Source: Cycas panzhihuaensis (Eukaryota > Plantae > Cycadophyta). Taken from it: DNA of 64,000 nucleotides. The position numbers and the translations under genes were made by a program. Positions 11,119 through 48,644 of the stretch are shown piece after piece (the first letter of the stretch is position 1; each line of letters opens with the position of its first letter). Where the stretch lies: positions 145,583,741 to 145,647,740 of the forward strand of contig CM041465.1 in the NCBI GenBank assembly GCA_023213395.1, given 5' to 3'. The notes under the pieces were generated by a model. That model had not been told where the DNA came from. It ran no database searches and was given only the letters and a program-made list of their open reading frames with translations.

Positions 11119-12793
11119 TTACACTGGATCAATATTTCTTCCAAATATGACACAGGAGCAAAGATGAATAAATACCAAAAATGGGATGTCAATAAATAGA
11201 TAAAGCATGACCTCTATTGCCAGGTAAATCTACTAACTACTTGAAAATGTTCTGTAATGCTATTAACACAACACAAGATGCCCAAATATTTCACTAACAC
11301 TAAAATATGAGAAACTCATATCTTATTTTAAAACAAAACAGCATTTTCCCAAACAATTCAAACTGAAAAGCATGGAATTTCAAAAACGCGGTCCCACAAT
11401 CAATTCTTGGCAGTTCTTATATGGATCCCTCTCTTTCTTTTTATCCTTTGTGCTTAACCACAATGAACTAAAAATATTTTATGCTGTACACAATCAGATA
11501 AGCAGCACAACCAAGTTAATTATCTGTAGAGTAAAGAAGGAAAGAAATGCACAGCTCTGCTGTAATGGATCTTGATTCTTAATGTATTGGAATCAATGCA
11601 GAGAAAAATTTGTTTGCATGCCATATATTTTGGAAAACCAAGTGGTATCTCAACAATGGAAGGGATGATATTTGTTTTTAAAAAATGGAAAAGCTTTTTC
11701 CTTTTCATTGGATAAGTTGGGCAAAATAACTTTGCTCACTTGCACTTTGATTTAGTTAAAAACTAAGGATTCATTTTTTTCAGAAGTTACATGCTACAAG
11801 CTGAAAAAGGGCCCAGTTATTACATAAAACCATAAGAAATGAGATGGGGAAAACTTCTAACAATTTATGGGACTTGAACCCCATGCAAGTACATGCAGAA
11901 GAATCAAGAAGTACAGAAGCCATAAAAGATAGCACAATAATGGGCAAGATTTTGCCCTATAAGGCCTTCAATGGAATTGTACATACACCAAAGACACCAC
12001 CTAAGCCCTGTTCATGCCACAAAACCCTCAACAAATGTGCCCAAGTGCTTAGATGGATCCTTATGAGGGTATACAAACTTGAAGAGGAACTTGGTTTCAT
12101 TAGTTAGGAAAATAGGAAAAATACAGTTGCACGGATTTGAGGACTCCAAAGCAGATTTTTTCTAGATTTCTCAATTTCGAGGCAAATAAGTGGACTCAAA
12201 ATGATCCTTTGGTCATAAGCTTTCTTTCAAGTACAAGTTTGCTAAATTTGACTCAAGATTTTAAGAGAAATAAGCAAAAAAGGCTTTCAAACGCTAGCCG
12301 CCCCTTTGTGTTTGACTACTTTTTTCTGCCTGTTTGGAAGTCAAATCAAAAATCTGACTTCAGAATCCTATGTACGGCCTAAATACCTTTGATTTGGAAG
12401 AGTTTCATCCAAATGCGTACACCTGTACTTTTGATCGTACATTCGTACAACTGCATGGACTGAGACTGTAATAGACATTCCTTAAACTCCAACTTCAATA
12501 CTTGTCTTCATGATTGCCTCAATCTATTCCCCAAGTAAGTTAGACAAATTGATATGCATAAATTATGCAACATAGAAAAATACCATGAAGGGATTGCTAA
12601 TTGCGAAAAATGCTTGGAAATTAGTTACTGACAAGGAACTTAAACCAACTATTAATGGAACAACAAAGATTAGCTGGGAGGAGAGGGACAAGCAAGCCTT
12701 AGCCATAATCACCTTGTCCATCAGTGATTCAGTTTTGACTCATATTAGCGGACCCTCCACTTCTGTCAAAGCATGGAAAACCCTAGATACCTT

Positions 12794-12903
12794 ATACCAG
12801 CGTTAATGCACTGAATCCCATCAGAACTCTGTATTTAAGTGTGCTTGGGTTGGAGTAGCACTAGGATGGGTGACCTCTTGGGAAGTCCTAGTATTGGACC
12901 CTT
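12794..12903 (+). pseudogene. 5S rRNA-derived sequence (nt ~11-120) forming the 5' head of a LINE
   Basis: ataccagcgttaatgcactgaatcccatcagaactctgtatttaagtgtgcttgggttggagtagcactaggatgggtgacctcttgggaagtcctagtattggaccctt is colinear, with no indels, with plant 5S rRNA as recalled (roughly 85% identity by eye, many differences being C>T/G>A). The C-box region GGATGGGTGA is intact at 12864-12873; the first ~10 nt of 5S are missing. Confidence 0.93.
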
Positions 12904-13532
12904 TAATATATAAGAGAGACGGCGGCTAGGGCGAACGGAAGAAGACGGGCGACTAATACGCAGATGGGCAGCTAGTGCACAACAACGGTGGCTAGGGTTA
13001 TCACGTTGGCTTCGGCCTGGGGGAGATTCCAAGGCCCAAGACGGGGCATGGCCCCATTCGAATGAAATGCCTCTCCTTCACAGACCGGGAGAGTAGTCCG
13101 CTCAGTACGGTGGAAGGGCGACGGACGAGTAGGATCTCCTTTTCCTTTGGAGTTCTACAAACGGCTGCAGCTTGGAGGAAGCCCGTATCGGGGCGTAATG
13201 AAGTGAAACCTAGCTATTCAAAGGCGCTTTCAGGGGCGGGAAGCCAGAATAACAAGGTTTGGATTGTGGAGCCAAATCCGGATAGCAGTGTCGACGAGAT
13301 CTATGGGTGTCAGGTGAGTTCTGCCCTGTTAGATGCTTACTATATACTGTTGTGAATTTTGTTTTTAAGTATGGAGCATCCAGTTCATAAAAACCAGATT
13401 CAATCCTCTCCCCCAAGAAGCACATACCTTGATGTGCTGAAAAATGGAGGTTCATAAGAGTATTAGATAAACCTAGTTTACCAAGACAACTGCATAAAAA
13501 TACCCATACCAAAAGACTTTACTACAAAGACC

Positions 13533-14735
13533 GTGGAATATTGGGAAAACAACTTGGTCAGGAGGTTCTCAGGGCCAAGACTGAGGCTTGATATCATCAG
13601 GAAATGGACAGTCAATAAGTGGAAAACGAAGAATCTGGTGGAGGTGATAGCTATGCCCAAGGGTTGCGTGCATTTTAGGTTCGCTAACCAGGAAGATATG
13701 ATTGGCATCCTTCTAAAATCTCCCTGGATGCTTGGGAGAAAGGCAATTACTCTGGAAAAGTGGCACCCAGATTTCGACCCATCAGTTCCAACGGTTAAAC
13801 AGGCTCCAATCTGGGTCCAGATGCCAGAGTTACCTCTGCAGTTTTGGAACCTGGAAGCAGTGAGAGTGGTGTCTAGAACTGTAGGGCCATTACTAGCGAA
13901 AGGCTCAGCAACTAAGAATAGAACCCGGTTGATAAATGCCAGATTTTGTGTTCTAGCAAAACTTGACAAAAACCTCCTGGAAGAGATTAGTATTGAAACA
14001 GAGAGGTGGAATATTAACCAAAAGTTGGTTTACGAGTTGGACTGCTTTAGATGCTCTATATGTAGGTGCCTGGGGCATCTTCCTTTGAAGTGCCAAGGAG
14101 AAAATAGGGATAGGGCTGGCGAGAAGGGAGGCCCAAGCAAAGTCGTTGAGGATCCAGAGGCAGAGGTAAGCGTGAGTGATACTTTGGGGACTAAGGTAAT
14201 TGAATCTCCTCAGATAAATCAATGCATGGAGACGTCCATCCTAGTGGAGGTCGAGGAAAAGGTCCGACCTACGGGCCAGAAGGAGGGACAGCAAGGGCCA
14301 GCGGTTATGGAAGAGGATGACGGTGAAGAGAGGAGGAGTAAGGAGGCCCCGGTTGAGGTAGCTGAGATTAGTCGAGATGAGAAGATGAAGGGGATTAATT
14401 GGGATGAGGAGGACCTTCTCTCAGAGGAAGGTGAGGAGGGGGTTCCGCTCGCAGGTAAGGCAGACGTGCAACAAGGGGTAGAGGAGAGCCAGGTTGGGGC
14501 TGAAGGCAGGGCTGAGGGGGCCCTAAATGTGAGAAGGAAGCCAAAAAGGCCACCTAGTGGGGATTGTAAGTGGATAGCAAGAAGAGCACCTGATTTAGGC
14601 AGCGATAGAAAGGTTAGCAGACCGTCTAAGAAAGTGATTCGAGATAGGGAAACAGTTTCCCAAATTGACCAAGGGTATCAACGTACCCTAAAGGAAGGGG
14701 TAATTGAAGGCTCGTTTCTCAGGAGTAGAAGATGA
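13533..14735 (+). pseudogene. LINE ORF1 (DUF4283-like region plus zinc knuckle); true start probably upstream and disrupted
   Basis: WENNLVRRF...FRFANQEDM...PWMLGRKAITLEKWHPDFDP...PIWVQMPELPLQFW, knuckle CSICRCLGHLPLKC, and an acidic C-terminus typical of plant L1 ORF1. Confidence 0.88.
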
Positions 14736-14765: not shown

Positions 14766-15840
14766 ATGAGGATATTATCATGGAATGTGAGGGGCCTGAA
14801 TGCCCCCTCTAAATAGAGAATTGTCAAGGACTTGAGATTTAGAATGGGGGGCGATATTATGATGTTGCAGGAAACGAAACTTGAGAAGGCTAAAGAAACA
14901 GAGGTGAAAAATAAGATTTGGAGGAATGGGGAGATGCTGGCAAAAGAGGGTCCTCTTGGATCAGGTGGCTTGGCGGTTCTCTGGGACACTAGAATTTCGC
15001 AAGGGATAGGTATGGTTCAAGAAGATCATTTTATGACCATATGCCTTACCTGCAGGAGAACAAATATCCAATGGCTTGCCACCAATATTTATGCTCCGAC
15101 AATGGTGGAAGGAAGAAAGACTTTATGGGACAGGATTGTGGTTGTCCACAAAGATTGGAAGGGCCCTTGGCTAGTTGCAGGGGACCTAAACGCGGCCCTA
15201 TCTCCAGGTGAAAAGAGAGGGGATCAAAAGTGTTGGTCCAGAAGCATGTCAGATCTAGGGGATTTCCTTCAGAAAGTTGGGTTGTTGGACGTCCCGCTCA
15301 GAGGGGCTAGGTACACATGCTCAAACAGGAGACTGGGGGACAATCACATCCAGATAAAGTTGGACAGGGTGTTAATAAACTACGAATGGACGAGACTCTA
15401 TGAAGACATCAAATTAGAAGCTCTCCCGAAAGTGGCTTCTGATCACTCACCTCTAATGTTGGAATTTAACACTCTAAATATCCATCGCGGGGCCCCCTTT
15501 CGGTTCGAGCTTATGTGGTTGAGGCATCCAGATCTTAGGGACAAGGTTAAGGAATGGTGGGGTATCACGGTGAAGGGGAATGCTATGTTTAGGTTCTCAA
15601 AAAATTTGAACTAGGTTAAGAAACAGATTAAAGTTTGGAACAAAGAAGTCTTCGGAAACATTTTTGAGGCCAAAGGCAAACTTCTTGAGGAACTTAGCAT
15701 GGTAGAGGGTAGGATCCAGGAGGAAGGTAGGTCCTCCATTCTGGACTAGATGGAGCGATCGACTACAAAGAACCTGGAAAATGTGTTGGCCAAAGAGGAA
15801 ATACACTGGAAACAAAAATCTAGAGCTCTCTCGCTGTCGA
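14766..15840 (+). pseudogene. LINE ORF2 5' part: AP endonuclease domain
   Basis: ATG at 14766 gives MRILSWNVRGLN, then LQETK, NIYAP, GDLN, KLDRVLIN, SDHSP, FRFELMW. Contains in-frame TAG stops and is cut at WKQKSR by the Copia insertion. Confidence 0.9.
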
Positions 15841-18800
15841 TGTTGAGGGAATGGATCTAGGGATCTAGTGCACTAACACTACACAATGGCAAATAGTGGA
15901 GACAAGCACAATGTACTCAACAAGAGAATGCTAATAACTTGAGCTCAAAGAGGAGAAGTGTAGAATATGATCACTCTCCATGTAATTTCAGCTTATATAA
16001 TGAGGATGCTCATTAGGGTTTGGAATTTGAGTTTTCCCTCCCAATGACATTCAAATGAGATTACATGAAATTACAATGAAATGAACTTTATATCATTTCA
16101 CTTAAGTGACTTAGGCATAGTCACCTTATCCTAAAGTTATAAACATAAAAGTGACTTTATCTAATACTAACTTCATGAAATGACCATGTGACATTAACAT
16201 CGTCACAATCCCCCCCTTAATGGCAGAAGGTCATTTTCCTTTATCCTATTCTAATCTATGAGGTCTTCATTATAGCCTTATTATTACATTGAGAAAAATT
16301 CTACAACCTACAAGACACTTTTGTGGCAAAACCCTCGGGGGAATAAAAACCCACGGACTTGACTTCCTATTCTATGAAGTGGCTCAGACGGCTCTTTGAG
16401 TGTAGCCAGATAGCCAAGCAGTACAAGTTGGTTTTGCAGCTTCAATTTGCTGAGTCTCCATATACCGTTTCGTCATCCCCCATGCCCTTTCAGGTTTTCA
16501 TAGGTTCTGATTTTCGAAACAAGTACAACCCAACTCCTTTCGCGCCCATGAGGGGTTTTCACGAATGGGAGAGAGCAAAGACTTACTCTAATCCTTCCGC
16601 GCCCACAAGGGGTTTTCACGAATGGGATAGAGTATGCTGGTCATGTGTAACATCTCCTTCAATCAGTTGGAGATGGAGGCCCTAAGGCCGAGCTGTTCAA
16701 ACTTCACCCTTTGCAGCGGTTTGGTGAAGATATCAGCCACTTGATCTGCTATGGGGCAGTGTTCCAATTGTATTGTGCCATCATAGACCAGTTCCCGGAT
16801 CCTGTGGACTTTTGTACTAATGTGCTTTGTACGATCATGAAAAACAAGATTCTTGGCCATGTGGATTGCTGACTGATTGTCCACATGTAAGCTCGTTGGA
16901 CCTGTCTGCGTGATATCCAAAGTATGTAATAATTTGCGAAGCCAGATCACCTCCTTGCTAGTCTCAAAAGCAGCTATGTATTCGGCTTCAGCAGTAGAAT
17001 CTGCAGTGATTTTCTGCCGCCTTGACCGCCATGAAATTGGAGTTGTTCCAAGAAATGTGATGTACCGGACGTTGTTCTTCCTGTATTTTTGTCACCGGCA
17101 AAATCCGAGTCTGTATCTTTGTAAGTCTGAAATCATTGTTGTGCTCATACAACAAACCAAGTTTGTTGGTCGTCTTTAGGTACTTCAACACTCGTATTGC
17201 TGCTTGCCAATGGTTCTGCTTTGGAGTTGTCATGTGACGGGCAAGAATGCCAACGGCATGGGCAATATCTGGCCTTGTGTTGGTAACATAATGAGGCTAC
17301 CTACAAGTTGCCGATAGAGTGTTGCATCTGCCTCTCGAATGTCTTCATCAGAAAGTTTGGCATTAGGCTCCATTGGAGTATACACTGTTCTGGCATCTTC
17401 TAATCCGAACTTGATTAGAAGATCGTTGATATGGAGAGAGATTTTTCCATTGCATTGAGTTACCTCAATTCCCAAGTAATATCTCATTAGTCCGAGGTCA
17501 GACAGTTTGAAGGATTTTGACAAGTCCATCTTTAATTTGCTGATATGCTGCTCACTATTTCCAGTTATCAGCATGTCGTCCACAAAGATCAGGAGATATG
17601 TGACTTTGCCTTTTTCTCTCTTAATAAACAAAGTTGCATCAATGTCTTGATAGTCACATACCTCATATCCAAGTTGCCTCATTTTGTTGGACAACTTGGT
17701 GAACCAAGCGCGAGGGACTTGTTTTAGGCCATATAACGACTTTTTCAGTCTACACGCTCGCTCTCCTGCTATCTCAAAGCCTTCAGTCGTGTCATGTAGA
17801 TTTCTTCTTCCAAATCTCCATTGAGAAAAGCGGTTTCACATCGAGTTGGTGGATTTTCCAACCCTGTTGAGCAGCCAAGGCCACAAGTGCTCTGATTGTG
17901 GGCCATTTGGTAGTTGGTGCGAAGACTTACGTAGTCGATGCCTTCCCTTTGGGTGAATCCTTTTGCGACCAACCTCGCCTTGTGTTTTTCAAGGGTGTCG
18001 TCGATCTGTATTTATTTTTGAACACCCATTTGCTTCGACTACCTTCCTTCCCAAAGGCGCATCAACGAGCTCCCATGTACCGTTCTTGATCAAGGATTGG
18101 TATTCCTCATTCATGGCATTTCTCCAAACCGTGTGTTTCATGACTTCTTGGTATGATAGAGGCTCGTCATTTGAAGCAAGGTGCGCTGCTGGTTCAAGCT
18201 CTATGGGAAGTGATGTTTGCTCCCTTGCTCAGTAGGCACCGCCGAGTGCGGTTTGCCTACCTCATCAGATCTCAAGTCTTTCTGCAACTGGTAGGCTTCT
18301 CGAAAACCTTTGGTTGGGAATGAGGTTTTCATTTCCACAACATCCTGGTCTTCATTTTGATCCTGAAAAGGATCATGGGAGATGTATGCTCCGAAGGTTG
18401 ATGACATTGCTGGAGAAGACATCCCTACAACTGAAGGTGGTGAAGGTGGTTCTTCTGCAACTCCTTTTCCTTTTGATGCTTGACGTGGTGATTCCTGGCT
18501 ATTCTCCCAAGATGGCGCTGGGTTGGCGCATATTGGCATAGGATCTGAGTCAAGAATAGTGTCCTCCGGGGCTCTATTGTCAGATTCCAAAATTTTGAGT
18601 ATTTCTTCAGTGTCTCCCCCCCCAAATGTTGGAATCAGACATCATATTCTCGACATCGTTGTATCTATGAGATGGTGCTTTAGAATCAAGTTGAAGTAGT
18701 TGATCCTCCGCTCTCAAAACACCACATCTCTAGTGATAATGATCTTCTTTAATGTTGGAATGAAGACCTTGTACCCTTTCTTGTTCATGGGGTACCCAAC

Positions 18801-21800
18801 AAAGATGCCCTTTAAAGCTCGCGGTTGGAGCTTATTTCTATGCTCATCAAGAATGTGAGCATAACAAGTAGAGCCAAAAATTTTGAAGTGATGGACTAGG
18901 GGTCCGGTCCCACCATCGCTCATTTGGAGACGGCCGAGCTTTGATGGACTTATGTTGTTCATGCAATAGATTGCGTGATAAATAGCTTCGCCCAAAGATA
19001 TGCAGGCACATTCTTGAAGACAAGCATAGCCCGTGCCATATTCATTATGGTTCTATTAGCCCTTTCAGCAACTCCATTCTGCTGAGGGTACCGCAATAGT
19101 TGTTTGATGCTTGATCCTCACGACACAAGAAGTCTTCGAATTCATTTGAAGTGTATTCGCCACCATTGTCGATCCGAGACACTTCATTGATATCCAATTC
19201 CTTCTCTGTGAGAGCCTTGAATGCCTTGAATACTGTGAATGCTTCATCTTTTGATTTGAGAAAGGTCACCCATACCTTTCGAGTGAAGTCATCAATAAAT
19301 GTAATATAGTACCTCTTCCCTATGAGAGAAGGGATAGGCAGAGGCCCACAGATATCTGAGTGTACTAATTCAAGAGGTTGACTGGCTTTCCATTGACTCT
19401 GGGGAAATGGTCATCGTGGGATTTGGCAATAATGCAAGCTTCACATTTGAATGGCTTAGAGGAAAATCTGAGCAGACCTGGAGTAGAATGAGAGATTTCC
19501 CTAAGCCGATCAAGTTTGACGTGCCCCATGCGAGCATGCCAAAGAACTTCTAGGGACAACTTGGAATGAGTCAATGTGACATTATATGCAAGTTCTTCCA
19601 CGACACAGATGGGGGCAACAACTTGGTATGCAGAAGAAGACAATGTGGTTCCAGTCAGTCTAAATAGCTTACCTTCAAGTTTCCCAGTCATTACCACAGA
19701 ACATGAAGACGGGTGAATAACACTAAGAACTTGATTATTAGCCGTGACACTCAGGTCGAATCCATGGAAGACAAGTGTGGATAATGACAGAAGGTTTTGT
19801 TTGAGATGGGGAATATACAAGACATCTTTTAAAGTAAAATTGGGCAGGCCTGGGAGCTTCAGGCATATAGAGCCCATGCCTTGAACAGGTTGTGTCGACT
19901 TATCGGCCATGTGTACTACTCCGGTGACCTCTGAATCAAAATCCTGAAAGAAATCCCGATGACAAGTCATGTGATGGGTAGCTCCTGTGTCCATAACCCA
20001 GTCTGATGATGATGTTGATGCAAAGATTTGCTGTCCAAGTGGTCGAGGTAGTGGCGAATCAAGGCGACAAATGGTCGTGCCACGGTGTGCCTCGATGTAC
20101 CTCTTAGGTCTAGAAGCAATAGATGAAGTGGATGCTTCCGCTTTGTTGAATACGTGCCTCAATGAGATTTGCTCTCGCAAATAAATCATCGTAACTCTCA
20201 TCAACATTGTGGGCTTGATGTTGCTGTTGTTGATGACAAGGCAATCTGCTGTAGTCAATGGGGCAATATTTTGCAAGGTGTCCTTTCCTGTTACACCTTT
20301 GACACGTGGGAGCATTGTTGTTTGGTCGTCTCGATTGACGATCTTTTGACTCTGCTTTGTTGCTAACCTTGTTGTTGCCTTTCTTTGTTGTCCTGTTGCT
20401 TTCCCCGCCTCTTCCACGACCTCTTCTTCCTCCGTGAAGATTGACCTTGTTGTTTGGTGCAAGATACTTCCTCGTCCATGTCGCCTTCAAAAGGCATTAG
20501 AGTTGAATCGAAAGTGGGAAGCTAGTAGTGAAGGTCTTGTCATGTTCAATAAACTTCTCGCCTAATGCTTGAAGTTGAGGGTCTTGATGTGCGGATGATG
20601 AAGATTTCCTAGCGAGGTTCTTATAATCGTGAACATGCGGTCGGATTGAATTAGGAAGGCCCGAGTTATGCATTGGGTCTTAAAATCCCTATCAATGGCC
20701 TGTTTAATGGGGCGAAGAGCATTGATGGTTTCATGTGCTCGCCCTTTCTGCATTCGCATCTTATTCATCTTCAATACCATATGAACAAACTCCAAGTCTG
20801 ATCGAGTATCAAAGTTTCTTTTGAGGACTTCGAGGACCTTGAAGGCAGTGTCGTGCTGTGTGTCATCGATCAGGTTGTGCAAGGAATAATCCGTAACTAG
20901 CAAGATCCCTACTCTGATCTTCTGGTCTTCAATGATCCACTGTCGTCGTTGCGGATTATGAGCAGGAGGAGCTGGAGGTGTGCCACCACTCTGCGGTGTG
21001 GTGTCGGTTGCAGGTACTATCGGGGTTCGCTCCAAGTGGTCCAGCCAAAGTCCCTCATACTTGGCTGCGTTCTTAACTCCCATGAACCATAGATCCCAAT
21101 TCTCCTTCCCTTTTAGCATACAGTTCACATTCTGCTTGAAGTTGGTCGACATGGTGGTGTGAAAAGATGAATAAGAGTGATGTATATAAATGTGTAGGAA
21201 ACTGCACTAAGTAGAAGAAGGTGGAGTCACTGACACTTGTGACAAGTCTACCTGACGCAGCAGGGAATAATGAAGTAATGCAATGTAAGATGTGGAAGCA
21301 AAGATATCACAAATAAGTATGTGATGTAAGTGATTTAATCAAGATAAGTGAGAAGGCCTATATAGAAGCCGGCATGTGGGTGCACACAACTGATAACCAA
21401 AGTGATGTAGGATGTGTAACAAACCCAAACCTCTAACTTGTATCCAAAGTAGGTGAGGTGTCGATGCCTAAGGGGGCTTCTAGTATACGTAATTAATGGC
21501 CTTCACCCGCGATACCCGCACCGTTCCTTGGTGATGAAATCCAAGTAAACGTGGAGCAGTGTGCACGGTCCTCACCAGTTCACCAATAAGCGATATACTC
21601 TCAAGAGAAGCGTGCATGTCCCACGGCTATGACGGATATTGGCCCAATAAATTAATTATCTTGATTAAGGGTTTTCAGTTTTCCCGGATGGTTATCAGGA
21701 TAATCCCTGATTGGAGGCCGTACGTATGGCTAACTTTGTCCCTCCACCACTATCTTGGTTATGACCGGACCCAAGATGAAACTCACACCTCCCTTAGGGC

Positions 21801-23667
21801 TGGACTTGACCAACCTTGGTCTATTTCAACCAAAGGCGGTATGCGCACAAATCAAGAATGGCGGTATAAAGTCGTCGAGATGAGTTGATTTTAAGGAAAG
21901 TGCTCTTGTTCTCGAATGTCATGTAAAAATAACTGAAAACTGAATGTAAATGAATGTAAATGCTCCACTTAAGTGTTGTTGCCATGTCCAAGTGTAGTGA
22001 TGACGTGTCCACCTAGTGCCCAAATGGCACTCTATGTACCCAAGTGGCACTCAATGAAGTCTCCAAGTGCATGCAACCATTAAAATCATACACATGATGA
22101 GCCAAATCATCGGATATTGCTCCGATCCAGATGATTGGCTTTACAAAGGATTTAAGTACCTTGTTCTTTTTACAAAAGGGCCAAAATAGGCCTCTAAAAG
22201 CCACAAAGGCTATAAATGTCTTTAAAAAACCCCTTTTACATACAATAATTTTTTTTTTTTTTTTTTTAAAGAAGGGAAAAAAAAAACTAAAAATTTGAGA
22301 AATACAATGTACGCTGAAAAATCAAATTTTCAGCAAACTAAGTCTATTTGTGGGCGATCTGCACTGCCTATTGTACCGCTATATGGCACAAATTTTAAAA
22401 ATTTTTGAAAAAAATAAAAATTTTCAGATTTGCTGGCCTTCACCTGCACTTTCCAAATATACAAAAATTTTTGAAAAATCTTATCAAAAACAGGGAAAAA
22501 AACCAGTTTTAACTCGCGGCCAAAATATACTAGAAAACCTAAAAATTGTCATAACTTTTCAACGGAGCGTCGGATTCATATGAGACCTGTCCCAAATGAT
22601 AGATCGGGACGAGGAGATCCAAAAACATGTATTACAGCAGCAAAAAACTCCTCAGATTATTCTAGATCTGAGATTTTTAAATTTGGAGAATGGCTGCAAA
22701 AACAAGTTGTTTGACCCCTTTAAACTCAAAATCTCGCGTCACTCCAGTTGACAAAAGTGCTTAGGAGGCCAAGATGCACCTACTGGTGAAATTTCGTGCG
22801 ATTCTGGGCACTTTGATTTTTTTGGCCGTACCGTTGTACGAAAATCCGTACAAATTGCATCCGTCCGCATAGCTTTGATTTTATACTTTAAAATCGCTTC
22901 TAATCGATGAGAGTCACCGATTTCTTCTTCTCGCAACCTTGAAATCGACTTTTACTACAAAAGATGGCCGAAAATAGGCCAGAATGCCAGATTTGGCGCT
23001 AAGAAATATGGCCGTAAATTGCTACAGCTTGAGCAATTCCTCGTGCTCCTTTAGGCACGCAAATAGGTTGCTTTTAAGCAGCCACACTCCTTCCTCTTAT
23101 CTGCAGAAATAAAATAGTACAACAACATATAATTTTGTACTAAAAATCTACTATAAAAAGAGCTTTAAAAAATGGATTTTTTTTTAAAAAAATCTCAACG
23201 CTTCACTTCACATGAATGGTGAAGAAGAGGAGAACATAGCTTGCAATCTCCTTGCAAGTGAGTGTGGCACTAGGATCCACCCAATGGCTCTGATACCACT
23301 TGTTGAGGGAATGGATCTAGGGATCTAGTGCACTAACACTACACAATGGCAAATAGTGGACACAAGCACAATGTACTCAACAAGAGAATGCTAATAGCTT
23401 GAGCTCAAAGAGGAGAAGTGTAGAATATGATCACTCTCCATGTAATTTCAACTTATATAATGAGGATACTCATTAGGGTTTGGAATTTGAGTTTTCCCTC
23501 CCAATGACATTCAAATGAGATTACATGAAATTACAATGAAATGAACTTTATGTCATTTCACTTAAGTGACTTAGGCATAGTCACCTTATCCTAAAGTTAT
23601 AAACATAAAAGTGACTTTATCTAATTCTAACTTCATGAAATGACCATGTGACATTAACATCGTCACA
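15841..23667 (-). mobile_element. Full-length Ty1/Copia LTR retrotransposon nested in LINE ORF2
   Basis: 367-bp TG...CA LTRs at 15841-16207 and 23301-23667 with 6 substitutions. TSD GTCGA at 15836-15840 and 23668-23672. Minus-strand iMet PBS at 23287-23298 and PPT at 16208-16219. Fragmented gag (CQRCNRKGHLAKYC), protease (WVMDTGATHHM), integrase, RT (FVDD) and RNase H (ADIFTKPL) in Copia order. Confidence 0.96.
23287..23298 (-). promoter_or_regulatory. tRNA-iMet primer-binding site of the nested Copia
   Basis: TGGTATCAGAGC on the minus strand, 2 nt inside the 5' LTR. Confidence 0.9.
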
Positions 23668-23672
23668 GTCGA

Positions 23673-26600
23673 AGGGAGACAAAAACACTAAGTTCTTCCA
23701 CATGTCTACTTTGAAACACAAGTCTTGTAATAGAATAAATATTCTGCGGAGCACAGATGGGGTAAATCATGTGAAGGAAGAAGAAATCAAGGTCATAGCT
23801 GTGGAATACTTCAAAAATTTATTTGAAGAACCCGGATGCCAGGAGACGGAATTAAGAAAGAAACTCATGAGTCATATTCCAAAGCTGAAGCTCATGAGTC
23901 ATATTCCAAAGCTGATTAATGATGATCAAAATAGGAGGTCGACGGATCCCTTTACATTGGAGGAAGTGGAGAAGGCTCTTTTCAACATGGGTCAGGATAA
24001 AGCTCCTACGCCGAATGGCTTCCCGCCGAGTTCTTCCAAGAATTTTGGGACATAATCAAGGAGGATCTAAAACTAGCTCTAGATGAATTTTCTAATAAGA
24101 AAACAATTCTAAAGGAGTGGTAGGCCACTTTTGTGGTGCTAATCCCAAAGAAGGAAGGAGTGAAACCCATGGAGGACTTTAGACCAATAAGCCTTTGCAA
24201 TGCAAAATACAAAATCCTAGCGAAAGTTCTAGCAAACAGGTTAAAGGAATGCTTGCCACTTATTATATCTCCAAATCAGGATGGTTTTGTTAAAGGCAGA
24301 CAAATTTTGGATGGGATAATAGTGGTCCATGAGACAGTTCATTCGGTCTATTACAGGAAGGAAGCTGGCATGTTGGTGAAAACTGACATGTCCAAAGCTT
24401 ACGATCGGGTCGCTTGGGATTGTTTGATGGAATGCCTCCAGGCTTTTGGCTTTGATAAGGCGTGGAGGGCATGGATGTGGTGTTGTATATCCAGGCCCTC
24501 CTTCTCTATCCTGATAAATGGGATTTCAACTCCTTTCTTCCCTGGTTTTAGAGGATTAAGGCAAGGGGATCCCTTATCCCCCTACCTGTTTATCATTATG
24601 GTGGAAATATTAGGGAGGGTTGTTGAGGAGGCCAGAAGGAAAGGGTGGGTGGCTGGACTAAAACCCTCATCTGGCATTGATAATATTGTTCATCATCAAT
24701 TTGTTGATGATAATATCTTTCTAGGTAAGGCGGCCCTACGGGAAGCTAATGCCTTTAAGGCGGGGCTCCAGGCTTACGAGAGGGATCCAAACCAGAGAAT
24801 TAATCTGGAGAAGAGTTCTATTTTCTTTATCAATACCCCTGAGAGATTGCAGAGGAGGATTAGCAGGGAGATGGAGATTCCTATTAGGCATCTTCCAACC
24901 AGTTATTTGGGGATGCCTTTATTTGTGGGAAACATGAGTAAGGACCTTTGGAATTCGATGGTGGATAGGATCCAACGAAAGTTGGTTGGGTGGAAAGGTT
25001 TGCTTCTTACTCAGGCAGGCAAAATCCAGCTGGTGGCAGCCTCTCTATAGAGCATTCTGGTTTATATGATGTCTATCTTCAGGATGCCGGGTAAGATCAT
25101 TTCGATCTTAGCAGGCATTCAGAAAAGATTTCTTTGGTCTGGCACAGAGGACAAGGACAAATTCCATTTGGTTTCCTGGGACAAGGTTTGTAGGCCCAGA
25201 TGGGCAGGAGGGCTCAATATCAGAAGGTTGGGGATGTTTAACAGGGCTTTGGTGGCCAAACTTGGGTGGAGACTAGCGAAAGAGGATGGTGCCTAGTAGG
25301 GAAATATTATAGACAAAAAGTACCTGGGGGGCAGGCACTTTTTAAGAGATGAGATGGGCGAAGTTTCTGGATCCTCTATTTGGAAGGGGTTGACCCATGT
25401 GAGACCCTTTTTAAGAAATGGTATGAGATGGAAGCTGGAGAACGGGGAGAGCATCAGTTTCTGGGAGGATAAATGGTGTGGAAACTACAAATTGAAAGAT
25501 AGACCATCCATTGGTAATCTGAAGGGCATTTCTGAGGGTACTTTTGGCCTTATGGTCAAGGACTACTGGGAGGGCCCAGGCAAAGATAGAGTTTGGAGAT
25601 CCTTTGAGGAGTTACAAGGGACCCAGGAGGGGGGGAGGAAGTATTCAGATCCTTAAGAGTGAGTTGATGCACTGGTATATTCCCAAAAGGCCTATGGCTG
25701 ATACAATTATTTGGCCTCACTCTTCCTCTAGGATGTACTCTGTGAAGGAAGGTTATCATATTATTTGCATGGAGGAGGGGTTTGGCAAGGACCTGCTATT
25801 GGCTGGGGTATGGAAGTTGGGGCTTATTCCCAAGGTGGCGGTCTTTTGGTGGCTCTGTTTATAGAATAAGATATTGACAATTGATAACCTCCACAGAAAA
25901 GGCTTAGTCATGCCAAATAGATGTGTGTTGTGTAAGAGTGACGAGGAGTCGTTGGACCATATCAGTATTCACTGCACCTTCTCCAGGGGTGTTTGGGCCT
26001 TTCTCTGGTCCAACCTTGGGATTGACTGGGTGATCCCTAAGACACTGCTAGACCAATGGAGGATGTGGAAATCTCCCTTTAGGTGCAAGACGTTGAGACT
26101 GCTATGGAAACTAATTGTGCCTGTAACAGTCTAGAACATTTAGAAGGAATGTAATAGAAGAATTTTCCAAGGGAGGGAGATGGACGAACCAAGGCTCTAT
26201 GAGTTGATATGTATGCTGACAGTAGAAATGCTCAAACCCTTAGATGAGGAAATGGTCTCGAAAGGGGAGGAAGGCATCATGGATCGTTGGGGGATTAGAA
26301 GAGCTAAGATCATTGGGGCAAAAAAGGAGAAAGTGCTCTTGGCATGGCCTAGTGCAAATTGGGTTAAAGTAAATTTTGATGGGGCGTCAAAGGGCAACCC
26401 AGGTGAGGCTGGTGGGGGAGGCCTTTGTAAAAACCCAGATGGTACGATAAGATGGGCCTTTGTGGAATTTTATGGCCATCAGTCAAACCATAGTTTGGAA
26501 TTGAAGGCTATGCAGAGAGTTGTAGCTATGGTTGATGAGGATGATAGCGATAAGGTAACAATAGAAGGTGATTCTCTGAATGTGATTAGGATCCTCAAGG

Positions 26601-26836
26601 GGGAGATGGAGGTCGATTGGTACAATGTGGACATAGTGAGGGATGCTCAAGATGTGTTAAGATCCAAACAGAGCTCCCAGATTTGGCATGCGTATAGGGA
26701 GGGTAATGCAGTTGCAGACTGGCTCGCCAATTGGGCAGTTCATAATAAGAGAATGATGGTTTGGAAAGGGAATTTCCCGGAGAAGCTTCTAAGTCTAGTC
26801 AAAATGGATGTGTTAGCCCAGAGTGGGGTGAGCTAG
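23673..26836 (+). pseudogene. LINE ORF2 3' part: reverse transcriptase, zf-RVT and RNase H
   Basis: GDKNTKFFH, FRPISLCN, DMSKAYDRV, GLRQGDPLSPYLF, HQFVDD, YLGMPL, zinc finger CVLC..ESLDHISIHC, RNase H KVNFDGASKGNPG/EGDS/HAYREGNAVADWLA. Several TAG stops and frameshifts. Confidence 0.92.
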
Positions 26837-29800
26837 TTGTTAGGCCTGTTATGACGCTTTTGTGTCAGTGTGAGGGTTGAGTTATGCTAGGCCATGGGCA
26901 TGTCACGGCCATTCTGTTCCGTAGCTGAAGGGCTGCTGTTGTAAAAGGTTTAGGGACCTATCAAAACCCCTTTTAATTTTTTTACCAAATCAAAAAAAAA
27001 AAAAAGAACGAAGCTTGTATTATTTCCCTAAGAGAACAGCTTTATCGATTATATCTACGGAAGGGAGAACAAATGACTGATTTCATTACCAAGTTGATAG
27101 AAATCAAAGATTAATTAGCCTCAACTGGAGAAACTATGAAACATACCGAAATTGTCTGTTTGATACTAAACAAATTGCCAAAATCCTTCGATAATTTGAT
27201 AAATACTCTTACTGTAGGAGGACAAGCTCAAAATATTTCCTTTAATACCTTGTGTGGTCATTTGCTTCAATAGGAACAAAGGACTTGTAGACATGAAGAG
27301 GGAGAAGATGTTGAAGAAGCCTTTATCTCAAGGCTTAGAATCAGTGAAAGAGGCGGATGAAGTGGTAGAAGAAGATCATTTGAGACCAGAAGCAACAGAG
27401 GAAGATCCTTCAAAGGAAGAGGCAGATCACCTGGCACTTGAATATGCTATTAATGTGGTAGAACAGGTCACATTGCAGCAAATTATAGAATTGCAAACAG
27501 TCGCTCATGCTACTATTGTGGGAGGTACGGACATCTCTCTAGCAACTATTTCTACAAGAGGTCTGATATTTCGAAGGGGAAACGAGCCGAAGGAAACTAC
27601 AATAAAGAATAGTCAAGGGATAATGATGATGAAGAAACCGCTTTTGTTGTTGCTTTAGATTCATCTGTCCAGCACAATGATAATTGGTTTATCAATTCAA
27701 GTGCATCTAACCATATGATAGGTAGGGAGGACTAGTTGGAATCCTTGCAGCCATACATGACAAACAAAACTATGGAACTAGGCAATAATCATCCTCTAGA
27801 GATCAAAGGAAAAGGAACTATAGCAGTTCAAATTGAGAATGAAATCAAAATAATTGGAAGCATGTTGTTTGTACCTAGCATAAAGAAGAATCTCCTCTCA
27901 GTATCACAATTGAGGAAGAAAAGACTTCGTGTGATCTTTGACGAAAATGGTAAATGTTATATTCTTGATATGAAAAAAGGTGTTCAAGTTATTGCTAAAG
28001 GAATAGAAACCAACGATCTCTACAAGTTGGTTTCTACCCCTATCACTTCCTCTATAAAAGCTTTTACTATTCAAGATAATAATAATGAAATATGGCATTG
28101 TCGCTATGGGCATATTTCTAATGATAGGTTAAATTTGCTAAAAAATTCCAAGATAGTTGATGGACTGACTAGTAATCTTACAATGAATGCTTTTGCTGCA
28201 AAAGTTGCATGCTAGGAAAACATCATAGAATGTCATTTCAAGAAAGCACCTGGAAAGCAAATAAGAAACTATAATTGATTCACAGTGATATATGTGGACC
28301 TATTACACCCAACTCTGTAAATGGTGCCTAGTATTTCCTCACCTTTATAGATGATTTTACTAGAAAATCTTGGGTTTATTTTATCTTTATCAAATTTGAA
28401 GCTCTTGATTGTTTTAAGAAATTCAAAGCCCAAGTAGAACTCGAAAGTGGGCACAAAATAAAAATGTTGAGAACTGACAAAGGCAAAGAATATGTTTCAA
28501 ATGACTTTTCAAGTTTTTGCAAGGCTCATGGCATCCATAGGCAGATAACGACTTCATATACAACTCAGTCAAATGGAGTAGCGACAAGATGGCTCGGTGC
28601 ATGTTGAAGGATAGAAGTGTATCAAACATGTATTGGGTTGAAGCTATCAATATTGTTATCTATCTATCAAATAGGTATCCTACAAAGGCTCTTGACAAAG
28701 TCACTCCAAAGGAAGCCCAGACAGGTGCAAAGCCAAATGTAAGTCACTTGAGAACTTTTGGATGCACTACATATGTACATGTTCCAACTCAGAAAAGAAC
28801 AAAATTGGATGATAAAAGCATTGAATGCATTTTAGTTGGATACAATACAAAATCAAAAGCTTATCGATTATTGGCATCAAAACAAAAACATTGTATGTAA
28901 GTAGAGACATGACCTTTGATGAAGGTGTCTCAACAGACAAAGATATTGATTCTTCGTAAAAGAATATAATAGTAGAGAAAAATGTAGAATCTACTATAAG
29001 CCCTACTGAGGAAGAATCAAAAGATACAGAAGGGTCAACTTATCAAGAAGAAACAAAAGAGTCAACGTCTCAACAAGAACCAGAATAGGAAGGGTAAGAA
29101 AATATCTCAAGAATAAGGTTACCTAAATGGTACCTAAAAACAATTGAGGAATCGAAAGGAGATGTATTCAAACATAGAACAAGATCTCAAAAGCATCAAA
29201 CCTTGATTTGTACAATCGAATCTCAAAATTTTGAAGAAGCTTGTGGAAGAATAGAATGGATAGAGGCTATGGAGAAGGAAATGAAGTCCATACAACAAAA
29301 TGACAGTTGGGATCTAGTTTCACCTCCAAGTGATAAACCTATTGTAGGCTACAAATGGGTAAACAAAACAAAAGAAAAATTTGATGGGAGCATAGAGAAA
29401 CACAAGTCCTGCTTTATAGCTAAAGGATACACTCAGACAACAAGTATAGACTACGAAGAGACCTTTGCTCCAGTAGAAAAACTCATAACCATTCGCACTA
29501 TTATAGGCTTAACAGCTCAACACAATTGGAAAATTATGCAAATGGATGTAAAATGTGTATTTCTTAATGAAGAACTCAACAAAGAAGTTTATATGGAATA
29601 GTCACTTGGATACATAAGGGAAGGACAAGAGCATTTGGTTTGCAAATTAGAAAAGGCACTATATGGTCTAAAATAGGCACCCACAACCTGTTATGCCAAA
29701 TTAGACCTTCATCTGCAACAAGCAGGATTTCATAGATGTGAAGCAGACCCAAGTCTCTATGTAAAAAGGCAAAGAGATTTGATCACCATAATGGTAGTCT

Positions 29801-30192: not shown

Positions 30193-33100
30193 TGTAGCAA
30201 CCTTACAGAATTCTTCTAATAGATTTTATAGAAATAGACAAAATATCCACCAAATGCACTTGCAAAATATCCAATCAAAAGAGCAATAATACAAATCCAC
30301 TTGAATACAAGTATAAAATGGTATGAAATGAATATAAAGTAATAGATACAACGTTACCAAAAGATCCCGCAAATTACTGACGATAAAGAATCCCTCTTCA
30401 AGGCGAGGTTCCCTCCACAAAGCTCCTCAAAAGGGCCGAAAATACTGCAGTCCAAGACTTCTTCTTCGATGATAAAATGAGGTTGCAAATCCTCCTTAAA
30501 TAGGCGACCAACGGATCGCAATAGAAGTCGGCCAAAAAAGATGATATTATTCTTAATACTGCACAAATAGAAGTCGGCCAAGACTTCTCCAAAAACTGGC
30601 AGGCTAACTTTAAATGGTCATAACTTTTGATACAGATGTCAGAATTAACTTTCGTCTGGATCGTTGGAATCATCGTTCAGAGACCTTTGATTTGAATGGT
30701 CATAAGCTATATTTATGACCATATTTAGGAATGCTACAAGTCTTCCCCCCTCAAAACATGCTTTGCCCTCAAAGCATCAGTAAATTTTTGTACTGTTGTA
30801 TCCATTCTTCAGATTCCCATGTGGCTTCACTATTCTCCATTGTTTTCCATTTGATAAAGTATTCTGTAATTTCACAAGAACGCAACTTTTTGGTACGTTT
30901 CTGAAGGATACCTTCTGGTTCAACTGATAGTCCTCCTTCCTCATCTAATATTGGAAGTTACATGCGGATTGGTACCCTTTCTCCTAACTTCCTCTTAAGG
31001 CAAGAAACGTGGAATGTATTGTGTATTCGGCAATCTGGGGGAAGCTCTAATTTGTAGACTACATCTCCAATTTTAGCCAAGATTTTATAGGGTCCAAAAA
31101 ATTTTGGTTGAAGTTTATTTCTCCCTATTTGTTTTAGGCTATTCTGCTTGTAGGGTTGTAATCGCAGAAAAACCCAGTCTCCTACCTCGAATGAACGCTC
31201 CGTTCTTTGAAGATCAGCTTGTTGCTTCATTCGATTGCGAGCTAAGTTATCTTTTAAGGTATCCAGTATCTACCTTGACTGTTGGTGATACTCTTCAATT
31301 GATTGTACTTTGGATGCCTGGGTCCAATTAAGAATGGATGGCAGTTCAAATCCATATAATGCTTGAAAAGGGGACATCTTGGCAGAAGTGTGGTAAGTTG
31401 TATTGTACCACCATTCTGCTAAATGAAACCATTTGTGCCATTGGAGTGGGCTTTGAGTGGTGAAATTATGTAGATAACCCTCTATGGATTTATTTACGGC
31501 TTCTGTCTGACCGTCTGATTGCGGATGATACGCAGAACTCATATTAAGCTTCGTGCACCTTAATCGAACAATTCTTGCCAGAAATGACTGGTGAATTTGG
31601 GATCACGATTACTAACTATCACTTTTGGAAACCCATGGAGACGATATATCTCCTTGATGAATAACTCTGCTATTTGAGGAGCTTTTGTCACGCTTGAGTT
31701 CCCCTAAAATGTGCATATTTGGTTAGTCGATCCACAACAACAAAAATAGTATCCTTACCTTCTGATTTTGGCAGCCCCGTGATGAAGCCCATGGATATCT
31801 CCTCCCGTCTTTGTTTTGGAATTGGTAGAGGCTGAAGAAGACCTGGAGCTTTTACATTCTCTCCTATGTTTCTTTAGTAGTGATCACATTCTGCTACAAA
31901 CTTCTGTATTTCTTCTTTCATTCCTTTCTAGAAGAAATTTTTTCAAACTTTGTGATAAGTTTTGTCTACTCCTGTATGGCCTCCCACTGGTGACACATGG
32001 GCCTCCTCTAAGATCTTTGTTTTAATTGCCGCTGCTATAGGCACTAGCATCTTACCTTTTCGCAAGATTAAATTTCCTTGGAGAGAGTACTTGGTATTAA
32101 GTCCTTCTTTGATTTTTGCAGCGCCTTTTGAGAATGAGTGTCCTTGTCGTAACCTTTGACTAGTTCCTCCGTCCATGCTGGGCTAATTATGGTAATGGCT
32201 TTTAATGATGCTTTATCCTCTTCATGATCTTCTGCTACGAATCTTCATAATGCGTCTGCTATGATGTTCTCCTTTCCTTTCTTGTAAACTATCGAAAAGT
32301 CAAATGCTTTTAATCTGCTAACCCACTTTTGTTGTTCATCTGTTAAGGATTTTTGATTCAGGAAATATTTCAGACTGTCGTGATCAGTCTTGACGATAAA
32401 TTTATTTCCTAGCAAATATTGTCGCCACTGTTGGATGGCATGCATAATCGCTAGCATTTCTTTGTCGTATATTGGTTTGAGGCGCTCACGGCTATTAAGC
32501 TTACGACTTTCATATGCTAGCGGTCGATCTTCTTGTAGTAAAACTGCTCCCAACCCAAAACTAGAGGCGTCACATTCAATAGTGAAGGATTTTGAGAATT
32601 GTGGTAGTGCAAGGACTGGGGCCGTAGTCATAGCTGTCTTTAGTTGTTGGAATGCCGCTTCCACTAATTGATCCCATTTAAATGCCTCTTTTCTTGTCAA
32701 ATCATTAAATCTTGCGACTATATGAGCATAACCCTTGATAAATTTGCGTACGAAACCGGCGGCTCCTAAGAATCCTCGAACTCCCGTAACATTCTTAGGT
32801 GTGGGCCAATTGATAATCGCCTCGATCTTCTTTGGGTCAATTCGCACTCCTTCGGAAGATATTATATGCCCCAAATATTCTAGCTCTCTGTTTGCCCAAA
32901 TGTACATTTCTTTTTGTTCGCGAACAATTGTTGGTTTTGTAATAATTGGAGGATGATCTGTATGTGTTGGAGATGCTCCTGCCAAGAACGGCTATAGATT
33001 AGAATATCATCAAAAAAACTAGCACAAAATTTTGAATATACGGCTTGAGGATCTGGTTCATCATATTTTGAAACGTTGGGGGCATTTGTCATTAAAGGCA

Positions 33101-35799
33101 TAACCGAAATTCAAATAGCCCTTCGTGTGCGGAAAGCCGTGTTATCGTGTCTTCCTCTTTGATGCGAATCGATAGTATCCAGAGCGTAGATCAATTTTTG
33201 AGAAGAACTTTGCTCTGTGAAGTTTATCCAAAAGGTCATCGATACGAGGAATCGGGTATCTATTCTTGATCGTTAATTTATTGAGAGCCGATAATCTCCA
33301 CATATACGATATGATCCATCTTTCTTTCGTGCAATTATAATGGAGATGCAAAGGGACTACTACTTGGGACGATGATTCCTTGTTGGAGAAGATCTTGAGT
33401 GATGTGTTCAATCTCTTGTTTATGATGGAATGGGTGCCTATATGGCACGATATTGTGAGGGCGATTGAGGAACCAAATCAATCGCATGCTCATATCCATG
33501 ACTAGGAGGAAGTTCGGTGGTAGTTCCTCAAAACCTTACTATATTGGTTAATTAGTTCTTGTACCTCCATGGGAACTTCTTCCTGCGCTATCTTATAACA
33601 AGAAATCATGAGCAGTGGGATTTTTCAAGTATCTTTTCCATCTGTTGAGATGATACCAATTGTCTTTGGAGGAATGTCGGGAGCCTCTAGCTTGTACTTA
33701 CGTCCCTTTTGGTGAAAACACATAAACCGCGTCTGAAAGTTGGTAACAATATTTCCCAAGGTTTGAAGCCATTGTACTCCTAGAACCACATCAACCTGGC
33801 CAATAGGCATGGCAAACATGCAAGATGTGGTTGAGTACTCTGCACTACGTAAGCTTACTTGTTGGCAATAACCACCACAAGGCATAGTCCTACCATTTGC
33901 TATTGCCACTTGGAATATATTGAGTGGTTGTACTATGAGACCTAACTTTTCTGCAGTAGGGTGATTTATGAAATTGTGTGTACTACCACTATCTACCAAA
34001 ATGGAAACCTCCGCATTTTTTATTAACCCTCGAAATCTCAATGTTTGTGGTGTGCGCATCTCCCCAGTGATGGCTTGAAGTGATATCTGAATATTGTCTG
34101 GGTTTGTATTCAATAACTCCTCTATTTGGGCTTCGTCTTCTTAGACCAATGCTTCCTCTTCTGTAATTTCATCCATAGTTTCATCAGGGAGAGGGTCTTC
34201 CTCATTATTCATCATGAACATTTTCTTAGGAGGGCATATATGTTCCCGATTATACTTTCCTCCACAACGAAAACATGTTCCATTCTTGATGTGTTCTGCT
34301 CTTGACATTTGTTCATCTTTTTTCTCCCCCATAGGAGCACCCACTTTAGTTCCAGACTGTGTCTAGTTTGGTTTAAATTGCTGGCTAGGAGGTCTTTCAA
34401 ACTCGAGCGAAACTTTGTCTTCCTTCTCTAAATTGCTTCAATGTTCACGGCATGGCGTATGGCATCGATCAGAAGCTCACTTCCATAGTCTTTAGTCGAT
34501 GCGATATTACCTCGAGACACCGCTATGTATACTTCTACAAGTTGAGGTTCACTAATATGGGCATCCACCATACTATGCGGTGCTTGGGCTGCTTGATAAG
34601 ATTGTATCGTCTTGGCTGTTGTAACCTTGTAAGTTGGGCGAAATAATCCATTTTCGTTGTATCTTCATATTGTTGGAATAGAGACTTCTTAAAAAAAATC
34701 CAATTGTAGTGGATTGTTCCCTCATAATTTCTTTGCCACCAATGAAAAAATTGTAAGGCTTCTCCGTATAAGTGCAACGCTGCCACCACCATTTTTTCTT
34801 TATTGGTTAAAGGGGTGGTTTTGAAGTAGACCTCAATCTGCATCACCCAACTACGAATATCCCGGGATCTATCTGGGTCAAACTTTTCTAGCTGAAATTT
34901 AGTTCCCTTAAGACCGAGCCCAACCTGATCTCTTGAATATTCCCCTTCTTCTTGGCTCTGCTCCTCTTCTTTATCTCTACTTTAAAATCCAAAATCTTTT
35001 TTTGGAGCCAACAGAATATCACGAATTTCTTGTATATTCGATTTCAATTCCTTGTACTGGGTTTGCATTAGTGTAATACTACCGTCCAAATGGTCCACCC
35101 TTTTTGACACGTCCTCGATTCCCTGGGAGGCTTGGAGCACCATTTTTCCTATTGTGGTTTTTCCTGACCTTAACTCCGTTCTAGTGAAAAAAAAAATTCT
35201 TAGATGTTTCTTGCAGAGACACGCTAAATACCCACTTCGAACGAAGCTCTGATACCACTTGTAGCAACCTTACAGAATTCTTCTAATAGATTTTATAGAA
35301 ATAGACAAAATATCCACCAAATGCACTTGCAAAATATCCAATCAAGAGAGCAATAATACAAATCCACTTGAATACAAATATAAAATGGTATGAAATGAAT
35401 ATAAAGTAACAGATACAACGTTACCAAAAGATCCCGCAAATTCTTGGCGATAAAGAATCCCTCTTGAGGCGAGGTTCCCTCCACAAAGCTCCTCAAAAGG
35501 GCCGAAAATCATAGTCCAAGACTTCTTCTTCGATGATAAAATGAGGCCGCAAATCCTCCTTAAATAGGCGGCCAACGGATAGCAATAGAAGTCGGCCAAA
35601 AAAGATGATATTATTCTTAATACTGCACAAATAGAAGTCGGCCAAGACTTCTCCAAAAGCCGAGCTAACTTTAAATGGTCATAACTTTTGATACAGATGT
35701 CAGAATTAACTTTCGTCTGGATCGTTGGAATTGTCGTTCAGAGACCTTTGATTTGAATGGTCATAAGCTATATTTATGACCATATTTAGGAATGCTACA
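30193..35799 (-). mobile_element. Full-length Ty3/Gypsy chromovirus (Reina-like), 5.6 kb
   Basis: LTRs TGTAGCA...TGCTACA at 30193-30738 and 35260-35799. TSD TTGCA at 30188-30192 and 35800-35804. iMet PBS at 35246-35257 and PPT at ~30739-30752. gag, protease (LVDSGSTHNF), RT (FFDDILIYS), RNase H (CDASSFGLG), integrase (GPY/F) and a chromodomain-like EYFIKWK...EATWE at ~30790-30950. Confidence 0.94.
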
Positions 35800-48151: not shown

Positions 48152-48644
48152 ATAACATAGATCAATGTTTATTTCTTTGGTTTTGGATGTAAATTCCCAT
48201 TGGAATCCCCACAAGTGGTATCCAAACCTCCTCATCAAGATCATTCATTTGTAAATTATATTTGGAGAATTTGATATTTGGATCTGGACTAATGGCCTAA
48301 AGCCATTAAAGCATTGTTGTGCCATTTTGGAAGGAAAACCTTGCCTCGAAGAGGGCAAGATACTACCATTATTTTATCTAATATATACTACTTATTGTGG
48401 CAAGTTTGATATTAATTTGATAGTATTATGTGGTCTACTATTATATTTGAATTACTGTGAATGTATGTTGTTATTTATGATGAGATGTTGTTTTTATAAA
48501 TTATCTATGGTGTGAATGCTGTATTTTCTATCTATAAGTAGTGGGCATCACCACGATAGCATAGATCAATGTTTATTTCATTGGTTTTGGATGTAAATTC
48601 CCATTGGAATCCCCACAAGTGGTATCCAAGCCTCCTGATCAAGA
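47837..48644 (+). repeat. 404-bp tandem duplication spanning an LTR end and the adjacent PBS-like site
   Basis: 47837-48240 is repeated at 48241-48644 with few differences; both copies contain CCCCACAAGTGGTATCCAA. Confidence 0.9.

Follow-up and report, generated by a model that had tools for sequence, protein, structure and literature searches.

In the DNA of Cycas panzhihuaensis, a segment derived from 5S rRNA and a LINE of the plant L1 type form a single inserted unit. Both are on the + strand, the 5S at 12794-12904 on the 5' side and the LINE from 12905 onward. The 5S sequence meets the LINE with its own natural 3' end, no gene flank being present, a poly(A) closes the LINE, and the gag gene of a Copia element harbours the entire unit at a single target point. 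The features of the locus are listed in Table 1, with positions given for the window, by which we mean the whole stretch of 64,000 nt that was analyzed. We hold it to be slightly better than an even bet that the unit is a chimeric retro-insertion from one retrotransposition event, in which the reverse transcriptase switched template onto a 5S transcript, and that it does not represent a heritable 5S promoter.

Table 1. Features of the 5S/LINE unit and of the Copia elements around and within it
Feature	Position	Strand	Remarks
Outer Copia gag, N-terminal part	12585-12797	+	Retrotran_gag_2, E 1.1e-14, profile 1-73 of 172; ends ...KAWKTLDTLY
Microhomology ATACCA	12794-12799	+	Common to Copia target (codons ..TTA TAC CA., gag ..L Y Q..) and 5S nt 11-16
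5S rRNA-derived segment	12794-12904	+	nt 11 to 3' end plus TTT, 111 nt, gap-free, 5'-truncated, decayed, in LINE orientation
Linker	12905-12956	+	52 nt from the 5S T-run to where leader contigs of other species start fitting; AATATATAAGAGAGA, then GC-rich
LINE 5' leader	12905-13370	+	CpG-rich to about 13320; CpG o/e 0.93, GC 0.54
LINE ORF1	13371-14735	+	DUF4283 (Pfam E 7.9e-28) and CCHC knuckle; ATG at 13371, frameshift before 13467
LINE ORF2, first part	14817-15840	+	APE at 14832-15614 (Pfam Exo_endo_phos, E 1.5e-09); contains stops
Nested Copia	15841-23667	-	7.8 kb, splits the LINE; 367-nt LTRs with 6 differences, TG..CA ends
LINE ORF2, remainder, and 3' UTR	23673-26991	+	RT at 24124-25047 (RVT_1, E 1.1e-33); RNase H-like at 26144-26833 (RVT_3, E 4.7e-15)
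Poly(A) tail, A14	26992-27005	+	Last 2-3 A possibly part of the Copia target
Outer Copia gag, resumption	27004-27267	+	Starts KNEACIISLREQLY...; Retrotran_gag_2 profile 113-161 at 27115-27267

Results

The 5S Part Is a Truncated, Decayed Copy

An Rfam scan of the 64-kb window returned a match to 5S rRNA (RF00001) at 12790-12898 on the + strand (56.2 bits with a gathering score of 38, E 4.6e-09) and no match to any other family. A permissive rescan of 12600-13600, with E values up to 1, again gave 5S and nothing else, so the leader of the LINE is not a known RNA. The edges of the 5S segment were set with Logan contigs from four runs (X1, X2, X6, and X7) of four related species, which we aligned to 12400-14200. 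Contigs of genuine 5S rDNA diverged from the window before 12794, and their unmatched letters ended in GGGTGCGATC, which are nt 1-10 of 5S; at this edge the genuine 5S has GGGTGCGATC followed directly by ATACCAGC. The same contigs diverged again after 12904, where the unmatched letters (TGCGATCTAAAAGTGC...; loose letters past 12904, TGCGATCTAAAAGTGCTTTC...) were rDNA spacer. Since the rDNA contigs left the window at both edges, the 5S part comprises 12794-12904. The bit score and these two edges confirmed the claim of an earlier note on this DNA that a gap-free 5S copy from nt 11 to the 3' end is joined to the LINE.

The T-run at the end of the segment is TTT in the window copy versus T4 in the 5S gene. 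Behind the T-run, real rDNA continues with TGCGATCTAAAAG..., whereas the window continues with AATATATAAG...; after T3 the window has AATATATAAGAGAGAC, and then the GC-rich leader follows. The comparison with the 5S rDNA spacer that the earlier note had proposed was carried out with all four runs. The spacer (T GCGATCTAAAAG... in genuine 5S contigs) was absent behind the T-run of the window, which past this point was unlike the spacer of any run. A sense 5S that ends within a Pol III terminator run and is followed by no spacer points to a join with a 5S transcript and not with a 5S gene, as is expected for a single template jump that placed the 5S 5' of the LINE.

The absence of the spacer also weakened the idea, raised in the earlier note, of a master copy located just downstream of a 5S gene. 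By such a 5' transduction, a transcript of a master LINE next to a 5S gene or 5S copy would have started in or before the 5S and carried it along. Like 5'-transduced L1s, which tend toward full length (10.1101/2025.02.02.635956), the LINE is complete, and the sequence 12905-12956, which the leader contigs of three other species do not share, could be flank of the master locus. But the sequence behind the T-run of the window is not the rDNA spacer of any of the four runs, a dispersed 5S copy with a LINE exactly at its terminator is required, and Pol III would stop at T runs. We regard 5' transduction as very unlikely.

The 5S segment has decayed into a pseudocopy, with numerous non-canonical pairs in its cmscan alignment and a CpG o/e of 0.17. 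The A-box region showed several substitutions relative to the Rfam consensus. One substitution was found in the C-box region, so that the C box cannot be called intact, as the earlier note had done. We rejected the interpretation as a functional 5S rRNA gene: besides the non-canonical pairs, nt 1-10 are missing, there is only T3, and the copy is solitary inside a Copia gag.

A contig of run X2 over 12803-12903 contained the 3' end of one 5S unit and the start of the next only ~5 nt apart (GTTTA, then GGGTGCGAT...). These head-to-tail 5S-like units of X2 are nearly spacer-free, in contrast to the normal rDNA spacer in other contigs.

A Short Linker Separates the 5S Terminator from the Leader

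The first 15 nt of the linker, AATATATAAGAGAGA, are AT/AG-rich, hold (AT)3 and (AG)3 microrepeats, and separate the T-run from the GC-rich leader. The earlier claim that the 5S is fused directly to this leader thus holds for the joint as such but not for its directness. Candidates for the origin of the 52-nt linker are the 5' end of the LINE, filler, and an old A-rich tail. The linker (12905-12956) was also present in X6 record 18, a contig of another species that is described below. A single template jump leaves the 15-52 nt from the T-run to the conserved leader unexplained, which counts against it.

The same 15-mer bears on the possibility that two elements inserted separately at this site. 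In that case, a 5S retropseudogene lacking its 5' end would have come into the gag first, its A-rich tail being the present AATATATAAGAGAGA, and a full-length LINE would later have inserted into or beside this tail. An A-rich 15-mer with such microrepeats behind the T-run is of the kind that old A-tails may become, and an old A-tail is a favoured endonuclease target. In addition, AAGAGAGACG at 12913-12922 and AAGAACGAAG at 27004-27013 are alike at 7 of 10 positions, but this likeness is not above chance (p about 0.9). Two rare events within about 15 bp would be required, and the decayed tail must differ at 6 of its 15 sites, versus a divergence of 5-15% between the neighbouring sequence and its relatives. 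No TSD as in a two-step model was found around the LINE alone. Taken together, two insertions appear improbable to us.

Judged by its composition (CpG o/e 0.93, GC 54%), the leader looks like an ordinary Pol II-type 5' UTR of a LINE. Monomer or tandem structure was looked for in the leader and not found. The CpG o/e of 0.93 applied to 12905-13320, compared with 0.17 in the 5S part, and there was no CpG at all in 13321-13532; the leader behaves like a CpG island next to strongly deaminated neighbours. An open frame of the leader at 12996-13313 ends with CAG/GTGAGT and is followed by an intron-like stretch of 56 nt (13314-13369, ...TTTTTAAG). The ATG of ORF1 (13371) lies one base past this stretch, and a splice would be out of frame with the ATG in this decayed copy.

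The LINE Is Complete in Its Parts but Interrupted

The order of the LINE is leader, ORF1, ORF2 (APE, RT, RNase H-like), 3' UTR, and poly(A), with a total of 6,269 nt. The ORF pieces, like the gag pieces, were searched separately against profiles, and the features of a plant L1-type LINE were all present (ORF1 of the DUF4283/RRM-like plus CCHC type, APE, RT, RNase H-like, and poly(A)). In an exhaustive HMMER search of Logan fragments, the closest database fragment to ORF1 was P0002, with 73% identity over the matched stretch (query residues 2-89). The N-terminus of ORF1 (MEHPV..STYLDVLKNG) parallels the N-terminus of this fragment. Clusters of the ORF1 relatives found by HMMER consisted of one contig each. 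A word-indexed protein search gave no match with ORF1 and none with the leader ORF.

This copy of the LINE is non-functional, as it contains stops, a frameshift, and the nested Copia. The latter is flanked by a perfect 5-bp TSD, GTCGA, at 15836-15840 and 23668-23672, and the reading of the LINE resumes across it (..KSRALSLS before and KGDKNTKFFH after the insertion). Its gene order on the minus strand was gag-PR-INT-RT, as read from the translated frames and not from profiles. Because this Copia lies inside the LINE, its age is a lower limit for that of the LINE insertion. The description of the LINE as a full-length L1-type element in the earlier note was correct with regard to the complete set of parts, but the element is not uninterrupted, in view of its frameshifts, its stops, and the 7.8 kb of nested Copia.

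Another LTR pair (30193-30738 and 35260-35799, 97-99% identical) lies within the pol region of the outer Copia, and the locus is consequently at least a three-level nest. Further downstream, repeats with a period of 404 nt were found at 47781-48540 (97%), with a related copy ~3 kb upstream at 44612-44980.

The Unit Was Inserted at One Point in a Copia Gag

The 5S and the LINE both lie between the two halves of one gag. A 36-aa open piece at 27004-27111 bridges the gap in the gag profile and is separated by a stop codon from the profile match at 27115-27267. The split of the gag is clean, with at most 1-2 residues gained or lost. Since the gag profile is continuous (1-73, the 36-aa piece, 113-161), all of the sequence between 12794/12800 and 27005 entered the gag at a single point. 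The earlier note had suggested that 5S and LINE arrived together in the Copia gag, outside any rDNA array, and the arrangement of the gag halves agreed with this. From the reading frame, the in-frame empty gag site would be ...TTA TAC CAA AAG AAC GAA..., and the empty site is predicted to occur as ...ACCTTATACCAAAAGAACGAAGC....

The 5' joint of the unit is a blunt join with a 6-nt microhomology. The gag frame requires TAC at 12795-12797, and at least 4 of the 6 nt of ATACCA are set by the gag reading; the two remaining nt are probably target sequence as well. Truncation of the 5S at nt 11 and the presence of ATACCA in both target and 5S argue for a single template jump, as do the continuity of the gag around the unit and the completeness of the LINE from the leader to A14. 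A TSD is lacking, which argues against it: none was found around the 5S+LINE unit, and the best match between the flanks was 5 nt (p about 0.6).

The Same Joint Is Present in a Second Species

A 472-nt contig from organism C (X6 record 18) aligned to 12814-13285 with 24 differences and without gaps (95% identity). This contig has the same 5S/leader joint and spans 91 nt of the 5S side and 381 nt of the leader side. As an independent contig, it argues against an artefactual joint. The region is repeat-rich and nested, as would suit an assembly artefact that joined a 5S-like read to the LINE, but with a contig from another species across the joint and with gag halves that fit exactly around the unit, we find such an artefact hardly credible.

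The upstream end of record 18 falls within the 5S, 20 nt from where this segment starts, rather than at the edge of the Copia. Its 3' end is overlapped by another leader contig of different sequence (record 19), which means two or more leader variants in organism C. At 13137 and 13197, the window and record 18 agree with each other, in contrast to the leader contigs of the other three runs. Record 18 keeps ancestral CpGs that were lost in the window, and vice versa. Its differences are mostly C/G-to-T/A transitions, several of them at CpG sites, on both sides, and this pattern fits an ortholog equally well. Either record 18 is orthologous to an insertion that is old, or it is a second copy whose head was inherited.

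The leader-like contigs of X1, X2, and X7 were 85-90% identical to the window and, among the contigs listed, started at 12957, 13000, 13043, or later. No contig bridging the 5S/leader joint was among those listed for these three runs. X1 record 2 fits the window only from 12957, and its 87 letters beyond this point are unlike the window. The bin depths of X2 and X7 were compatible with the same start at 12957; as all four runs consist of contigs, such depths count contigs and were not taken as copy numbers. Within the window, self-BLAST over the 64 kb revealed no second copy of the 5S, the leader, or the LINE. Metagenome scans gave 0 matches to the junction pattern and, for a conserved 21-mer of the leader, one 35-nt chance match.

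We considered whether these data reflect a small lineage of 5S-headed LINEs. Transcripts of the chimera, or of a copy like it, would have begun within the 5S or upstream of it and undergone a new round of retrotransposition, and the copies of the window and of organism C would be paralogs with an inherited head. The head need not be a Pol III promoter for this, as Pol II or read-through transcription would be enough. Such a lineage is in line with the gap-free joint of record 18 in a different species despite 24 differences, with the end of this contig inside the 5S instead of at the Copia edge, with the leader variants of organism C, and with the shared states at 13137 and 13197. The LINE was full-length at insertion, and the 5S is far more CpG-decayed than the leader, which also fits. 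On the other hand, leader pieces of X1, X2, and X7 start at 12957 or later, with no listed contig across the joint, the window has no second copy, and the transitions of record 18 suit an ortholog equally. As X6 has no recorded library type, record 18 could be a DNA family member, an ortholog, or a transcript. We consider the lineage doubtful. That the unit is a living chimera is in our view unlikely; in this case, a full-length L1-type LINE would have retrotransposed at least once more with its 5S head and would now make up a small lineage found in two or more plant species.

For a single template jump, the same joint at 95% identity in another species is a difficulty, because the head was inherited at least once if record 18 is not an ortholog. 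The CpG o/e of the 5S (0.17) versus the leader (0.93) could likewise mean that the head was already old when the copy was made. In weighing a single event against a second copy with an inherited head, we lean towards the single event.

Discussion

How the Chimera May Have Formed

In the reading that we favour, a single retrotransposition event, the LINE reverse transcriptase would have copied a full-length LINE RNA at a nick in the Copia gag. At the 5' end of this template, the enzyme would have moved on to a primary transcript of 5S, which it entered at the 3' end (5S-UUU). The end of the cDNA, which lay inside the 5S at nt 11-16, may then have joined the upstream target via ATACCA without formation of a TSD. 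Later, the chimera would have decayed and the nested Copia would have split the LINE. Both the template switch and the microhomology-mediated joining are steps that we infer from the structure of the present copy.

The 5S Is Not Supported as a Promoter Module

Pol III terminates at runs of four or more T. The sense strand of the LINE contains 27 such runs, the first at 13140, 13357, and 13362, all before ORF1. A 5S-driven Pol III transcript would therefore stop at these T runs, and a full RNA of the element could not be made in this way. Runs that Pol III cannot pass are in agreement with a single template jump. The earlier note had suggested that the 5S might be a heritable promoter module. 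In addition to the T runs, three of which precede ORF1, the mutated A-box region, the missing nt 1-10, and the Pol II-type leader speak against such a module, and the leader contigs of three species fit only from about 12957 or later. We conclude that the data lend no support to a heritable promoter function of the 5S in an autonomous family.

Relation to Known Chimeras and 5S-Containing Elements

Mammalian chimeric retro-insertions of small RNAs and L1 were reportedly described by Buzdin and colleagues. In mammals, U6, U3, 5S, and other small RNAs form chimeras with L1, for which template switching of the reverse transcriptase or RNA ligation before reverse transcription was proposed (10.1101/2025.02.02.635956). 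The unit of the window shares with U6/L1, U3/L1, and 5S/L1 chimeras a small Pol III RNA in the 5' position, a joint at its natural 3' end, a LINE with poly(A), and the organization as one unit; chimeras of the mammalian type are not expected to propagate. It differs in the plant host, the full-length LINE, the sense 5S with a kept 3' end, the lack of a TSD, and the occurrence of the joint in a second species. The 5S/L1 chimeras of the mammalian survey were mostly antisense, with a 3'-truncated 5S, the 5S start at the joint, and a mostly truncated L1 (10.1101/2025.02.02.635956), and the sense 5S and full-length LINE of the window are in this respect a point against a single template jump.

Fungal chimeras of MGL with WEIRD and other RNAs in Magnaporthe are reportedly bi- or tripartite retrocopies, ascribed to template jumps in the course of LINE reverse transcription (PMC2104539). 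They would resemble our unit as template-jump retrocopies outside mammals and differ in the partner RNA and the host. Together with the small-RNA/L1 chimeras (10.1101/2025.02.02.635956), these reported fungal LINE chimeras (PMC2104539) are precedents for a single template jump. In a limited literature search we found no plant small-RNA/LINE chimera, such chimeras being documented in mammals and one fungus. The 5S/LINE unit is most likely a plant counterpart of the small-RNA/L1 chimeras.

Two other groups of elements contain 5S sequences. The 5S-headed SINEs (SINE3/AmnSINE1, MEG, and HaSE3) likewise carry a sense 5S head 5' of a non-LTR element and have a LINE-type tail. They are short, non-coding, Pol III-transcribed, and multi-copy, whereas the unit of the window has a 6.3-kb coding body with Pol III terminators. 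We rejected the assignment to SINE3-like 5S-headed SINEs on account of this body, the 27 T runs, and the A-box substitutions. According to a 2024 review, no 5S-derived SINEs are known in plants (PMC10946416). Cassandra TRIMs are plant retroelements with 5S-derived sequence, but they have it in both LTRs of a non-autonomous LTR element, while the unit described here has one 5S, at the head of a LINE, and no LTRs. A Cassandra TRIM was rejected because the 64 kb contained a single 5S match and no LTR pair around the 5S.

Implications

A chimera of the 5S-LINE type is the postulated first step in the birth of a SINE. In small-RNA/LINE chimeras, template switches of LINE reverse transcriptases are preserved, and such chimeras are presumed to be the raw material of SINEs. 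With a Pol III transcript attached to a LINE that is complete and formerly coding, the present case would demonstrate end-to-end template jumps by L1-type enzymes of plants. A joint present in a single copy would be a well-dated curiosity within a nest of retrotransposons. A multi-copy joint would mean an autonomous 5S-headed LINE and would offer a direct test of how SINEs acquire their heads. Should the unit indeed be a living chimera, it would represent the first 5S-headed autonomous non-LTR element, a precursor of 5S-headed SINEs caught in the act.
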